Shown here: positions 10,101 to 18,700 of the stretch, one piece after another | Numbering within the stretch: the first letter of the stretch is position 1 | How the letters are laid out: each line of letters starts with the position of its first letter | Source of the DNA: Macrostomum lignano | Taxonomy: Eukaryota | Direction of reading: 5' to 3' | Assembly (NCBI GenBank): GCA_002269645.1 | Contig: NIVC01000561.1 | Span: 1 to 64,000 of the forward strand | Length of the DNA: 64,000 bases | Position numbers and translations under genes: made by a program | The notes under the pieces: generated by a model | Database searches by the model: none | The model's input: only the letters and a program-made list of their open reading frames with translations | Told to the model about the DNA's origin: nothing

Positions 10101-11918
10101 GTGGTTCGACGATTACAATGTTTGGTAGTGCCGCTTCTTCTTTGACCTCTACTATGTCTTCTTTAGGTTCGTTATCCGATCTTGTAGCTTCGACAACTGC
10201 TAGTCTGGGCATTCTTAGGAATCTAAATTGTTCGCCGAGGTCGTACGCTTTGCCAAGCTCGCACTGAGGCAGCTCAGCATCAAGACAGAAGCCTTTCTCT
10301 GTCAAGCGATGTCGGCCGTCTTTTGATGCATCAACTACTATTTCAGATCGCAGGGTTCGCATGTTTTGATCGACTACATCCAGTGTTGTGCAAGTGATTG
10401 ATGGGCCTAATGTCACCTTGTGCATAGCTCGATTCGCAGCCTTACGAGTTACTTTTTTCTGGCCCAGAGGACGTACCGAGTGTATGAGCTGAAACTTCGG
10501 CGCGCCGTCGTCACCGTCACCGGTAGTTAAATTTTCACTTGCCTTTGACTCTAAAGTTGGTAGAATTACCGGAAGGTTTGATTCTGGGGTATGAATTGCG
10601 TTTGCATCGGAAGATATTGGTGGCGACTTCGGTGGAGAAGGCGAAGCTGGTTTAGCAAACGAAGTCTGAAGCAAAGTTGCTGTGAGACTCATCTCGGGTG
10701 ATGCTTTGCCCGAATCGCCAGATTTCTCAGTGTTGATGATCTCTGTTGCTTCCGCTAGATAGCTGTATTGATAGGTGCGTGTTTCCTGAGGACGGCTCTG
10801 GCGCTTGCGTTGCTGCTCAGCGGCCGCTATTTCTAACTCGTCTGGCGGCGGTTCGTCCACAATTATCAGTGCTTCTTCGCTACGTCGAAGACGCTGACGC
10901 TCTTGCATCTGCCTCCGACGTTCGCGCACTTCCTCCATGCGCAAATCTTGATGCGAGCTTGTTGTAGCCGGCCTGTGTAATTGGAGTTGATTCCGGCCGA
11001 AGCTACTCATTTCCGGATGCTCGCTAAGCGCATGGTGCACCTTTGCAACTAAATCAGCGATGGAACTGCCACGTGAGGCTATAGTAGCGGCGGCAGAACC
11101 GCGACGAATAGGTGTTGTGGACGTGGTGGTAGACGTTTCAACGACCGGCGTCACTTTAGGTCGCGGCCGCTGACTGGGCAAGTTTTCAAGAATCACGCTG
11201 ATGCGTTGATGCCTCTCAGCCACTGTGCCATGGCCAAGTCGAGGCGCACTAGCGTAGCGAGCTCGATATGACTGCTCGATGTTGCCGGTGTGTGGCTCCG
11301 CCGCGCCCCTCGGGAAAGTTAGTCGGGGTTCCGGCACTTCATATCCGCTAGACGAACCACCGGAAGATCGCGCGGCTGACCTAGCAGACGGGGGCGCCTG
11401 CTCCGACGCCGGGTGGACGGCGTTTCCCGGCCAGGCCGCCTGCTTGGCCTCGTAGAACTTGGCCTTGGCCTCAGCCAGAGTCGGCATAGATGTGGTTAGC
11501 TCGATTGGCGACACGCAGGCATCCCGTCGCTCCGGTTGCTGCTGCTGTTGGGGCAGCGGCGGTGCAGAATCAAACACCGAACTGGCGGCCGACCAGCGCA
11601 TCTGGCTGTCTCGGCTTTGTCTGCTATCGACATTGCCGGATCTCTCCCTGCTTCTCGCTGAGGATGACGATGAAGACGATTCACTCGAGTGTCGCCGTCG
11701 TGCCTGCTGTTGTTGTTGTTGTTGCTGCTGCTGCTGCTCCTGCGGCGGCTGCTCCGAAGCCGGACGTTTTGGTCGCAACTTTACCGACAGAGGCCGCTGG
11801 TGCTGGCCAGCTTCGGTTGACGAGGTCGACGATGACCCCGGATCGCGGCGTGGGCGCATGCGAGCTGGCGGCTGCTGCGGTTGCATCTCCGCCGCTGCCG
11901 ATGGGCTCTGGCTGTCGC
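1..11918 (-). CDS. Giant unknown protein (~3,900+ aa in window, 3'-truncated): low-complexity N-terminal part, helical middle, then ~312-aa tandem repeats
   Basis: Collinear minus-strand ORFs 8590-11958, 7994-8713, 6693-7973 and the repeat fragments join up: acceptor tttacag|GC at 11918; one apparent 1-nt frameshift near 8600; an 83-nt GTAAGA...CCTACAG intron at 8097-8015 joins ...LKP to NLGLTGLETVRALTVMKG in frame; then repeats to the window edge. No family recognised. Confidence 0.7.
8015..8097 (-). other. 83-nt phase-1 intron in the giant repeat gene
   Basis: AAG CCA A|gtaagag...AT-rich...cacctacag|AT CTT GGC; removal fuses ORF 7994-8713 with ORF 6693-7973 in frame. Confidence 0.75.
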
Positions 11919-15754: not shown

Positions 15755-18700
15755 CAATGGCTGGCCGTATTGTTAGCTTAGGCGAGGGTGGCTCCAGTGT
15801 ACTCTGCGAACCTGTGCTGGAATGCCTGTGTAAATAAATAAGTTTGTCATATTCTTATTCAATCTAGTCAGTAGGTGACTTTTATATTGATTCTTTTGTT
15901 TAAATTGAAAAAGAGTAGTGATCTGTGATGTGAAAGTGTACAATTAGTGTACTTTATTTAAATTTAGTAGTTTAGCAGACAAGCTGCTTGCTTTGGAAAG
16001 CTATGGTCTCCCCTGGGGGCCCTCCCGTCCCCACCCCCACCCCCACCCCCTGGCCAGTGTACAAGATTTCTGCGTACATTAGACGACCCCTCCTACTCCG
16101 CTCACCCTTAGCTGGAGTCCCCCCTTTCTTTCCCTTCAGCAAAGCCAGCCCACGATAAACTAACTTAATTGGACTTGGATTTTCAATTCAACACTGACAC
16201 TGACTTGGCTAACGGTTGAAATTGAAACTTTGTAGATTGCAAGCCAATAAAGCTTGCAATTCAAAAAAAAATTGTCATTTTCTGTTCTGCTCTGCTCTGC
16301 TCTGCTCTGCTCTGCTCTGCTCTGCTCTGCTCTGCTCTGCTCTGCTCTGCTCTGCTCTGCTCTGCTCTGCTCTGCTCTGCTCTGCTCTGCTCTGCTCTGC
16401 TCTGCTCTGCTCTGCTCTGTTCTGCTCTGTTCTGCTCTGCTCTGCTCTGCTCTGTTCTGCTCTGCTCTGCTCTGTTCTGTTCTGTTCTGTTCTGTTCTGT
16501 TCTGTTCTGTTCTGTTCTGCTCTGTTCTGTTCTGCTCTGTTCTGTTCTGTTCTGTTCTGTTCTGTTCTGTTCTGTTCTGTTCTGTTCTGTTCTGCTCTGT
16601 TCTGTTCTGCTCTGTTCTGTTCTGTTCTGTTCTGTTCTGTTCTGTTCTGTTCTGTTCTGTTCTGTTCTGTCATGTTCTATTCTGTTCTGTTCTGTTCTGT
16701 TCTGCTCTGTTCTGTTCTGTTCTGCTCTGTTCTGTTCTGTTCTGTTCTGCTCTGTTCTGTTCTGTTCTGTTCTGTTCTGTTCTGTTCTGTTCTGCTCTGT
16801 TCTGTTCTGCTCTGCTCTGCTCTGCTCTGTTCTGTTCTGTTCTGTTCTGTTCTGTTCTGTTCTGTTCTGTCATGTTCTATTCTGTTCTGTTCTGTTCTGC
16901 TCTGTTCTGTTCTGTTCTGTTCTGTCATGTTATGTTCTGTTCTGTTCTGTTCTGTTCTGTTGTGTTCTATTCTGTTCTGTTCTGTTCTGTTCTGTTCTGT
17001 TCTGTTCTGTCATGTTCTATTCTGTTCTGTTCTGTTCTGCTCTGTTCTGTTCTGTTCTGTTCTGTCATGTTATGTTCTGTTCTGTTCTGTTCTGTTCTGT
17101 TGTGTTCTATTCTGTTCTGTTCTGTTCTGTTCTGTTCTGTTCTGTTCTGTTCTGTTCTGTTCCGTTCTGTTCTGAAAATTGACAGAATCTTCCCACTCAC
17201 CCAGCAGTTGCAACCGTTGCAACCTTGGCTTCCTTCAGTTCTTCTTCATTCAGATTTTCCCCAGTTTTTGCCACCTCCACTTTGCCACTTGAAGGTACTG
17301 AGGCACTATCGCTGCCCAGACTGTCCAGACTCCCTTCAGCTTCATCGCTGGTGTTTCCCGCGGCCGACTCGGCAGCTGCCTCCGCTCCGTCCTCTCCAGC
17401 CTTTGACGCAGCCGCCTGGGCATTTTTCTCGCGCTCTCGCTGCTCCCGCTTCTCCTCGGCGCTGGAAATATCGGCGCCTTCCAGGCTGTCCTCCATCAGA
17501 GCGGCTGGTCGCGGCGTCATGGGCATCGGGCCGCTCTGCTCGGTGTAGATACTGGACGGGTGCGGCAGAGGCCGTGGGCCTGCCGCGGCGGGGGCAGTCG
17601 ATGCTGGACTGCCCTTCAAATCCGGCAAAGACACCGAGTTGCGCTCTAGTTCGTCACCGCTAACAAGACCGTCGCTGGTCCGACGACTGTAGGGCGGCTG
17701 CTGCTGCTGGGATGCCGGGTCGATTGTCAGCTGCTGCACTGACGCTGACACCGCCGCCACTGGCAGCATTGGGCGCCGTCTCTGCTGCGGCTGCTGTTGC
17801 TGTTGCTGCTCATTTGGTTCATCTTCAAGCGAGTCCACCGATTGCGTATCCTCGTTGTATTCATCATTATCATCAAACTCGGCTCCTTTTGTGGCCGGAT
17901 TTTCGCCAGCAAGGTCGTAGTAGAACTCTACCGAGTGTCGAGGCGGCGCCTCGTGAGAAGTCAGCTGTTCAAGAACGACTTGCCTGTAAGGCGAGACCTC
18001 TAATGTGATTGGCTGGCGGCTCATCTCAACCTGTGGCTGGATATTAGTAGATTGTCGCTTCGTCTTTTGTTTCTGATGCTGTTGCTGCCGCTGCGACGGA
18101 CTCTGTCGCTCACGCAGGTGTCCTCCGCTGCGTCGTTTTACCGCAGTGGACGTCTTGTCCGCCGCCGCCGACAGAGCTCCGACGGGGAGACTGCGCCGGT
18201 CCCCCGGAGCAAACTTGTAGCCCCCACCTGCGGCTGTTTTTGCCTCAGCTGTCAAATCTTCAAGAGACTCTTCCGGTACACTCAGAAGGCTAGAACCGCC
18301 ACTAAGTCGTGCCGCTGAGGCAGACAGCGAGGAAGGTCCTACAGGAGCAGCAGCTGGCCCCGTTGTTCGGCTGACGATTTCGCCACTCAAGAAGCGACCT
18401 TCGGGTGTAAACTTTGTCTGCACCCGGCGACTGCCACCGCGACGTAGCGACACAGTTGTCTCTTCCACAGTGGCTCCTGCCGCATCTGCAGCTTGCGACA
18501 GCTCCAAATGCGGTGCGCTCTGTGCAGACCGCAGTCTCGAGGCGGCACCTTCGGCGCTGCCTCCACTCGTCAGCCTTCTACGAGCTTCTGTCGAAGGTGG
18601 CTGTCCCGGATACAGACGTGACGTCACAGCCTGAGCTCGCTTCGACGTTTTCAATTGCTTTCTTTTGGTCGACGCCTGCCTAGACGCGTTCGGTTGTTCG

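Follow-up and report, generated by a model that had tools for sequence, protein, structure and literature searches.

The locus examined here raises the question of whether a KIF16B-like kinesin is spliced in frame to a giant repeat-coding exon lying 3.8 kb downstream, or whether the two parts belong to separate genes. The window, that is, the whole stretch of 64,000 nucleotides analysed, was confirmed by comparison to be Macrostomum lignano contig NIVC01000561.1:1-64000. GenBank already holds a minus-strand model at this locus, PAA80877.1 (BOX15_Mlig029284g2, gene Mlig029284; 2,505 aa), and a single gene is called across 39.4-8.6 kb in the annotation of this contig. Twenty-four GT-AG exons within the window, when spliced and translated, reproduced PAA80877.1 residue for residue, and the chain of exons 22 (19268-17201), 23 (15825-15755) and 24 (from 11918) is part of this model. 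The same junctions are used in PAA80910.1 (BOX15_Mlig029284g1, 2,177 aa) on the diverged sister contig NIVC01000560.1, and the peptide that spans the kinesin-tail junction was found in both proteins. The kinesin-to-tail splice is real and is already included in the public RNA-based annotation. Relative to the gene proposed below, the two entries represent the same locus and its duplicate, with an identical exon chain including the kinesin-tail junction; both are unnamed and uncharacterised, and they end at contig-specific frameshifts (2,505 and 2,177 aa, respectively). Exact look-ups of the bacterial-style open reading frames (ORFs) at 17200-19248 and 8593-11958 returned no match, because the annotated products are spliced.

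The GenBank annotation of M. lignano is the 'coregenes' set, which was derived from a genome-guided RNA-seq transcriptome by a pipeline (TBONE) in which spliced-leader (SL) and poly(A) sites, mapped experimentally, serve to split transcripts (PMC5730564). This pipeline neither made a cut nor called a separate gene between 17.2 and 11.9 kb. Our basis for the junction is these RNA-derived gene models. The literature and supplementary tables searched contained nothing on Mlig029284 or its expression, nor did they provide peptide, long-read or expression evidence. It should be noted that short-read transcript assemblers are able to join neighbouring genes via rare read-through junctions.

The kinesin part of the gene is encoded by exons 1-22. 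Exons 1-21 (39432-19588, minus strand, with the ATG at 39432) were obtained from the exact spliced reconstruction of PAA80877.1, and comprise the motor domain (exons 1-13), the FHA domain (exons 16-17) and the coiled-coil (exons 18-21). Pfam analysis of PAA80877.1 identified Kinesin (PF00225, 4.7e-100, residues 18-385), Microtub_bd (7.7e-23) and, after the neck, FHA (PF00498, 6.8e-09, residues 493-557), the last of which was also recognised in the exon-17 segment by itself (5.9e-06). The kinesin-associated domain between motor and FHA (PF16183), which is listed for most KIF16B matches, was not detected in PAA80877.1 at E <= 0.01. The top PDB matches of the motor were KIF13B, KIF1A and KIF14 (~1e-90). 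Among the best 120 matches of the motor and FHA region, all those with a gene name were KIF16B, kif16bb or Klp98A (40-57% identity), in agreement with the KIF16B-like label given originally; the assignment to KIF16B/Klp98A rests on these best named matches. Exon 22 (19268-17201, minus strand; 2,068 nt) encodes a coiled-coil and low-complexity stalk and ends at a phase-2 donor (TGCTGG/gtgagtgg). Two ML2-based UniProt models, A0A1I8HTB2 and A0A1I8JIW6, both end in ...VATVATA, exactly at this donor. If it is left unspliced, GGG is followed by an in-frame TGA at 17199-17197; this stop and a second one reached from the unspliced exon-23 donor (15740-15738) had been missed in the original prediction. 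Intron 22 contains a (TTCTG)n microsatellite of ~179 copies (16280-17174; Tandem Repeats Finder).

The bridge between the two parts is exon 23 (15825-15755, minus strand; 71 nt), which has a phase-2 acceptor (ttatttacacag/GCATTC), a phase-1 donor (CCATTG/gtgagtgc) and no internal stop, and is present in both PAA80877.1 and PAA80910.1. Codon scoring gave 0.28 per codon for this exon, and the mean of the null was -0.19. Both substitutions between the contigs in this exon (15795 and 15756) are synonymous, a comparison that is too weak as a test of candidate exons considering that 16.25-11.8 kb is ~99% identical. At 11918 the acceptor reads aaatgtttacag/GCGACA, and the join of exons 23 and 24 is in frame (...TIRPAI-G-DSQSPSAAAEMQ). 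The original prediction had inferred this join from a donor at 15755 and an acceptor at 11918; both sites exist at these coordinates in the phases it had assigned, and its in-frame fusion of kinesin and repeat ORF recurs as the same exon chain in the two public models. In the spliced reconstruction, intron 23 (15754-11919, minus strand; 3,836 nt) is the longest of the gene. It carries a 15-nt tandem repeat (14929-15156) that the sister contig lacks, and no Pfam domain was identified in any of its minus-strand frames. Upstream of the acceptor at 11918, the open frame scored -0.73 per codon, which is strongly non-coding. Judged from the sequence, a short isoform might possibly end within this intron at 15740-15692 (minus strand), where read-through of the exon-23 donor would add GECFV before a TGA (15740-15738) followed by AATAAA (15697-15692); this end is not part of the annotated model.

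From 11918, exon 24 extends at least to base 1 of the window (at least 11.9 kb). The annotated part (11918-8590, minus strand; 3,329 nt) encodes a Q/S/P-rich linker and then a unique helical region, and the CDS ends at a TGA (8592-8590). The continuation of the exon (8592-6727, minus strand) extends the unique helical sequence and includes a first repeat unit that has diverged; in the window it carries further 1-2-nt deletions at 8058, 6899, 6837 and 6730. It is followed by a tandem array (6726-1, minus strand) with no fewer than 7.2 units, nearly identical and 933-937 bp long; the array runs off the contig start. Of these lengths, only 933 is divisible by 3, and the intact unit on the sister contig measures 939 bp (313 aa). 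Both contigs end inside the array, and the true C-terminus lies off contig. The tail is predicted to be all-helical, and its 313-residue repeats are acidic. What had been described as a giant repeat ORF does not form a single ORF in the window: the frame that opens at 11918 closes at the TGA at 8592-8590, and between this stop and base 1 the segments free of stops shift frame ~17 times. The only annotation of the array consists of two orphan mini-genes (169 and 133 aa), which are transcript-derived models on the minus strand; when their ORFs were used as queries for other contigs with the distal array end, only NIVC01000561.1 was returned.

Homology searches with the N-terminal 1,148 aa of the tail, as well as an HMMER scan of the 1,108-aa exon against 1.84 billion cluster representatives, gave no match. 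These negative results say little about the tail, because both searches also missed PAA80877.1 and PAA80910.1, the proteins of the locus itself, likely due to poly-Q/S words filling up the limit of 8,000 candidates and to a kinesin representative having absorbed them when clustered at 50% identity. What can be said of the tail is that no homologue was detected, which falls short of proving it an orphan. Foldseek comparison of a repeat-unit model with the PDB revealed nothing significant (best E-value 0.23). Neither PX (PF00787) nor START nor any further domain was found in PAA80877.1, in the sister contig's ORF of 1,494 codons, in the frames of introns 22/23 or in that part of the window array units that was scanned.

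Whether the array is translated depends on how the frame breaks are explained. The annotated stop at 8592-8590 is due to a 1-nt deletion at 8593-8594 (minus strand; AATCTTG to AATTTG), which was identified by pairwise alignment with the sister contig; at the 8594 site the sister reads ...PGPYDHTILSSTLEALQ... and has no stop. At each window break compared (8594, 8058, 6899, 6837, 6730, 6471, 5964, 5902 and 5795), the missing base is present in the sister contig, where a single open frame of 1,494 codons leads from the unique region into the 939-bp units and runs off the contig end. Two alternative accounts of the units were rejected: for short introns, no plausible GT...AG pairs could be found ahead of the stops, and the frame of the sister contig continues with no intron; for SL-trans-spliced mini-genes, one per 933-bp unit, neither an acceptor motif nor a start codon was present, and on the sister contig the units are read in a single frame.

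It is possible, although we consider it distinctly the less likely case, that the splice is real and the frameshifts are real mutations as well, with a product that ends at 8592-8590 (2,505 aa) and an array that goes untranslated and decays as a remnant, its units homogenised through unequal crossing-over. Several deletions recur across the array outside long homopolymers (GGCAA-AAGG in 7/7 window units, GAAGA-AGCC in 6/7), and all sister units have the extra bases, which makes the difference contig-specific rather than specific to a sequence context. In addition, redundant duplicated copies are present in the M. lignano genome (PMC5730564). Deletions common to all seven units could mean that the array of the window copy is genuinely frameshifted. 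However, indels are in excess between the contigs (13 events versus 28 substitutions) and among the window units (11 indel versus 5 substitution columns), a ratio far above the neutral expectation. The units differ mainly by 1-nt indels with variable inserted bases, as would consensus noise; one indel site has either A or G as its extra base, and lysine is encoded either way. Moreover, the segments between breaks are still open for 130-450 codons, and the sister contig has two private deletions at sites that are intact in the window in the pairwise alignment. Single-base assembly or polishing errors (PacBio/Pilon) are the likelier cause of the breaks. Several of the array-wide deletions lie outside long homopolymers and are not easily explained by random read error.

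Most likely, the annotated 2,505-aa end is due only to single-base assembly errors, and the true protein probably exceeds 5,300 residues. If the breaks are errors, the window most likely contains 5,370 or more codons of the frame but not its end. The protein of more than 5,000 aa proposed originally thus remains inferential but well grounded: relative to the sister contig, whose frame stays open for 1,494 codons across the same region, the window breaks are single-base deletions. On the whole, we consider it likely that the locus is one gene, in which a KIF16B-type kinesin is cis-spliced to a giant tail with a frame that is open through the array.

A second explanation, that two genes are involved, appears unlikely. 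The kinesin would end either in the read-through of exon 23 or at the TGA overlapping the exon-22 donor, the repeat protein would start from an ATG exon of its own, and the fusion would represent minor read-through or a chimeric assembly. A candidate alternative first exon for such a tail-only isoform does exist at 12658-12541 (minus strand), a 118-nt ATG-initiated open frame that encodes MSSGSAGRFAKLASRSVRPLIPAVAVALTDLFLQGGGRR and is closed by the competing phase-1 donor already noted at 12541 (CGACGAG/gtaaac), from which it joins 11918 in frame. Its codon score of 0.47 per codon equals the coding mean and lies in the top 5% of the null, as for true coding sequence, and its only difference from the sister contig is one synonymous change. 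The stop at 15740-15738 with AATAAA 41 nt downstream could serve the kinesin, and a tail with no detected homologues would be expected of a separate lineage-specific gene, with the reservation that the searches missed the protein itself too. On the other hand, the candidate exon is absent from the annotation: two independent contig models both use 17201 to 15825 and 15755 to 11918, and neither uses the ATG exon. Its donor (G/gtaaac) lacks the +5 G of the species consensus GT[G/A]AG (PMC8629364), the pipeline that cuts at mapped poly(A) and SL sites did not split the two parts, and exon 23, at 71 nt, should be short enough for single reads to phase both junctions.

Some 30% of the genes of M. 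lignano undergo SL trans-splicing, for which the trans-acceptor motif is [T/C]TNCAG, and operon calling in this species uses an intergenic spacing of <1 kb (PMC8629364). It is very improbable that the tail mRNA is mainly produced in an operon-like manner, by SL trans-splicing at 11918 with a start at the first in-frame ATG (...AAAEMQ) and with the cis fusion as a by-product: TTACAG at 11924-11919 fits the motif but is equally a good cis acceptor, the distance of 3.8 kb exceeds the operon spacing, an upstream cis donor is available at 15755 and is used in the annotation, TBONE made no cut at 11918, and the ATG at the SL end, as we read the sequence, is out of frame with the ORF.

Under the single-gene reading, at least 24 exons would be cis-spliced into one mRNA of Mlig029284. 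The product of exons 1-22 would begin with a kinesin-3 motor of the KIF16B/Klp98A type and continue with an FHA domain and a stalk of coiled-coil and low-complexity sequence; exon 23 would bridge in frame, over the 3.8-kb intron, to the giant last exon, in which a Q/S/P-rich linker would be followed by ~1,400 residues of unique helical sequence and then by the acidic, all-helical tandem repeats of 313 residues. The reading frame would continue through the whole array despite the apparent breaks in the window. The fused isoform would be the main one, and the tail may form an elongated helical rod or scaffold that replaces, or lies ahead of, the usual PX lipid-binding cargo domain. On balance we favour, with somewhat less confidence than the single gene as such, one kinesin-3 of more than 5,300 residues, with a KIF16B-type motor and at least eight lineage-specific 313-residue repeats instead of or ahead of PX. 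Such a motor would have a giant rod or scaffold of its own and, to our knowledge, the longest kinesin tail that bears repeats. The junction is already annotated, and the architecture of more than 5,300 aa is an uncharacterised variant.

In kinesin-3, the tail normally terminates with a small module for cargo binding, for instance PH, PX or START. KIF16B and Drosophila Klp98A, which are endosomal, PI3P-binding members of kinesin-3, share with the M. lignano protein an N-terminal motor followed by FHA and a coiled-coil stalk. However, most KIF16B matches have PX and PF16183, neither of which was detected in the ~5,300 residues available here, and the M. lignano tail would be three to four times as long as the whole of KIF16B and is built of 313-aa tandem repeats with no detectable homologues. 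The other relevant case is STARD9, whose tail is mostly encoded by one giant exon. STARD9/KIF16A is a very long protein whose N-terminal part comprises a KIF16-type motor and FHA (PMC10203878). With this vertebrate kinesin of ~4,700 aa, the M. lignano protein would share, if the breaks are errors, the KIF16-type motor and FHA, a length of more than 4,000 aa and a giant tail exon. They differ in that the C-terminal START of STARD9 was not found in the available M. lignano sequence, which ends within the array, that the M. lignano tail is a near-identical tandem array whereas that of STARD9 is unique sequence, and that the best named matches of the M. lignano motor are to KIF16B and not to STARD9. 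The tail searches, which also missed the locus itself, detected no relation in sequence between the two tails.

The locus serves as a positive control, in that a splice inferred from raw sequence alone corresponds, exon for exon, to an RNA-derived public model. Assembly indels have probably shortened both GenBank entries, and the mini-ORFs annotated within the array are likely to be artefacts; the locus provides a concrete case for re-polishing and re-annotation. If the proposed architecture is true, near-identical helical repeats extending over several thousand residues would be an unusual feature of a KIF16B-type motor, and would suggest a tethering, scaffolding or structural role over simple vesicle binding. 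It would also mean that a conserved motor has captured, or has grown, a lineage-specific repeat gene.

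Homology searches recovered the locus in public databases. Two Macrostomum lignano UniProt entries matched the window exons at 99.5-100% identity when FHA and stalk were used as query, and a query of motor, FHA and repeat retrieved PAA80910.1 (the model on sister contig NIVC01000560.1), of which PAA80877.1 (the model at the window locus) is a cluster mate; GenBank names them 'hypothetical protein BOX15_Mlig029284g1/g2'. The PAA80877.1 locus (NIVC01000561.1:1-49432), reverse complemented, was identical to window bases 1-49432, and thus the window is the first 64 kb of the 472,844-bp contig in the Mlig_3_7 assembly. 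A 24-exon coding sequence rebuilt from the window, with all introns GT-AG, ATG at 39432 and stop at 8592-8590, reproduced PAA80877.1 residue for residue. The sister contig is annotated with the same exon chain; its kinesin introns differ by 3-11% (roughly 89-97% identity), and it is therefore a genuine duplicate rather than the same sequence.

The original prediction, that a KIF16B-like kinesin is spliced in frame to a giant repeat frame, agreed exactly with the window sequence at 15755/11918, and the same join is present in both GenBank proteins. On the minus strand, exon 22 (19268-17201, 2,068 nt) ends TGCTGG/gtgagtgg, its last two bases opening a codon (phase 2), and is followed by a 1.4-kb intron consisting mostly of a (TTCTG)n microsatellite (∼179 copies). 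Exon 23 (15825-15755, 71 nt) has the acceptor ttatttacacag/GCATTC and the donor CCATTG/gtgagtgc, and after an intron of 3,836 nt, exon 24 begins at 11918 (aaatgtttacag/GCGACA) and opens the long frame. These models come from a genome-guided RNA-seq transcriptome, of which the GenBank annotation is the 'coregenes' subset; the transcriptome was assembled with StringTie, TACO and a de novo assembly that had been mapped, ORFs were called by TransDecoder, and transcripts were cut where spliced-leader or poly(A)-adjacent reads mapped (PMC5730564). Between kinesin and tail, the GenBank annotation of the contig has neither a cut nor a second gene. The predicted kinesin-tail splice is thus supported, the chief limitation being that the RNA evidence comes through gene models rather than reads, and the junction can already be found in public records, in two unnamed entries labelled 'hypothetical protein'. 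Long mini- or microsatellite arrays occupy nearly every kinesin intron between 20200 and 35700 (for example, at 35.4-35.7, 33.5-34.1, 32.5-33.1, 31.1-32.1, 27.7-28.6, 23.4-24.0 and 20.2-20.5 kb) and give rise, on both strands and in several frames, to spurious ORFs of considerable length. Intron 23 contains a 15-nt tandem repeat, TCCGGACATTTGCCC (14929-15156, ∼15 copies), and ∼500 bp around it (∼15400-14760) are missing or unalignable in the sister contig.

The predicted 'giant repeat ORF' does open at 11918, but it is not a single ORF in the window, where a TGA occurs at 8592-8590. From 8590 to base 1, stop-free stretches switch frame ∼17 times, and the repeat units measure 935, 933, 937, 935, 934, 937 and 934 bp. 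Alignment of window 11918-5119 to the sister locus showed 28 substitutions and 13 indel events, and every window frame break compared is absent from the sister, where one or two additional bases keep the frame open. At 8594 it reads AATCTTG for AATTTG, the extra base abolishing the annotated stop and giving ...PGPYDHTILSSTLEALQ..., and at 8058 it reads TAAGAAT for TAAAAT; the breaks at 6899, 6837, 6730, 6471, 5964, 5902 and 5795 are likewise restored. The uninterrupted sister frame of 1,494 codons (46900-51381) covers the remainder of the unique region, an initial diverged repeat and two complete units of 939 bp (313 codons), and runs off the contig end. The sister's own break consists of two single-base deletions (46883 and 46917) that truncate PAA80910.1 at 2,177 aa, and this site is intact in the window.

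When the window units were compared, indels affected 11 columns and substitutions 5; at one indel site, four of seven units have an extra base, A or G (AAA and AAG both encode lysine). The assembly was made with Canu from PacBio reads and polished with Pilon (PMC5730564). Consensus or polishing error is the favoured explanation of the frameshifts, because they are private to each contig, are all single-base deletions and have an indel-to-substitution ratio far above that of neutral evolution. That the window array is genuinely frameshifted is rather unlikely, although several deletions are common to 7/7 or 6/7 window units and lie outside long homopolymers. If assembly error is accepted and the breaks are closed, (4,189 + 11,918)/3 = ∼5,370 codons fall within the window, with the array still open at the contig end, so that the predicted motor of >5,000 aa would stand, whereas the frame as assembled stops at 8592-8590. 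It is probable that both GenBank proteins are truncated by assembly indels and that the array shares the kinesin reading frame, neither of which appears in the record or the literature. Two annotated mini-genes within the array (5948-6457 and 1082-1483, minus strand, 169 and 133 aa) are repeat-unit fragments read between frameshifts. They are almost certainly annotation artefacts, but as transcript-derived models they do cover the array.

Alternatively, two genes might be the main state, the kinesin ending by read-through of exon 23 and the tail starting in a separate ATG exon. An unspliced exon-23 donor would give GECFV and a TGA at 15740-15738, with AATAAA 41 nt further on (15697-15692), which the original prediction did not mention; the competing donor that it did propose at 12541 (CGACGAG/gtaaac) exists, and ends an open frame of 118 nt that starts with ATG (12658-12541) and joins 11918 in frame. 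The codon score of this exon (0.47 per codon) equals the mean of true coding sequence and ranks among the highest 5% of intron windows free of stops. However, the exon is unused by the annotated models on both contigs, its donor GTAAAC departs from the species consensus GT[G/A]AG (PMC8629364), and the two base differences between contigs in exon 23 are both synonymous in the frame used. Two genes are thus improbable as the main state, and these signals may mark minor kinesin-only or tail-only isoforms. Spliced-leader trans-splicing at 11918 is less probable still: the acceptor fits the [T/C]TNCAG motif (PMC8629364), but the 3.8-kb spacing does not fit and a used cis donor is present. An unspliced exon-22 donor would also meet an in-frame stop (GGG TGA, 17199-17197), likewise unmentioned in the prediction; the consensus donor GG/GTGAGT (17197-17206) itself holds this TGA, and intron-22 retention would yield a kinesin ending ...VATVATAG. 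The older UniProt models A0A1I8HTB2 and A0A1I8JIW6 stop one residue short of this, precisely at the exon-22 donor, and also split exon 22 by a spurious intron.

The start of NIVC01000561.1 (window 1) and the end of NIVC01000560.1 (51382) both lie inside the array, and the accession numbers are consecutive. The two gene copies face each other, and contig identity is ∼99% from ∼16.25 kb through the array and ∼89-97% in most kinesin introns; an inverted segmental duplication centred on the array, or gene conversion, is a speculative reading. Upstream of the kinesin are an annotated C2-domain protein gene (45263-49432, plus strand, 575 aa called), divergently oriented on the opposite strand, and a separate gene with a protein kinase domain (Pfam Pkinase, 1.7e-42), of which an open frame at 63321-63998 on the minus strand covers the C-terminal two-thirds.

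The only Pfam domains detected in the 2,505-aa PAA80877.1 were Kinesin (4.7e-100), Microtub_bd and FHA (6.8e-09), and nothing exceeded threshold in the 1,494-codon continuation. The motor is of the kinesin-3 type (best PDB matches KIF13B, KIF1A and KIF14 at ∼1e-90), and the 'KIF16B-like' label was borne out, all gene-named top matches of motor plus FHA being KIF16B, kif16bb or Klp98A. The PX domain (PF00787) and the kinesin-associated domain PF16183, found in most KIF16B/Klp98A relatives, were not detected here; since neither contig reaches the far side of the array, a PX or START domain may follow at the C-terminus. Ala, Leu, Glu, Asp and Lys are abundant in the repeat unit (net charge -23); AlphaFold2 without alignment predicted it to be all-helical (mean pLDDT 77), and the model had no significant structural match in the PDB. 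Two homology searches detected no homologues of the tail and also missed PAA80877.1 itself, which was in the collection, so that their sensitivity there was poor: low-complexity words probably saturated the candidate cap in one, and clustering at 50% identity probably hid the protein behind its representative in the other. Negative homology results for low-complexity queries should be treated with care.

In family terms, the protein belongs to the KIF16B-type kinesin-3 motors and has a non-canonical tail. A giant tail exon is a feature of STARD9/KIF16A as well. In this vertebrate protein, a KIF16 motor and FHA head ∼4,700 aa with a START domain at the end (PMC10203878). STARD9/KIF16A, which shares this general layout, is the closest functional analogue, whereas the M. 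lignano motor is nearer KIF16B, the M. lignano tail consists of near-identical tandem units and no terminal lipid-binding domain was seen before the contigs end inside the array. If the array is in frame, the product would be a kinesin of >5,300 aa whose tail carries the repeat array, an architecture absent from the record and the literature.
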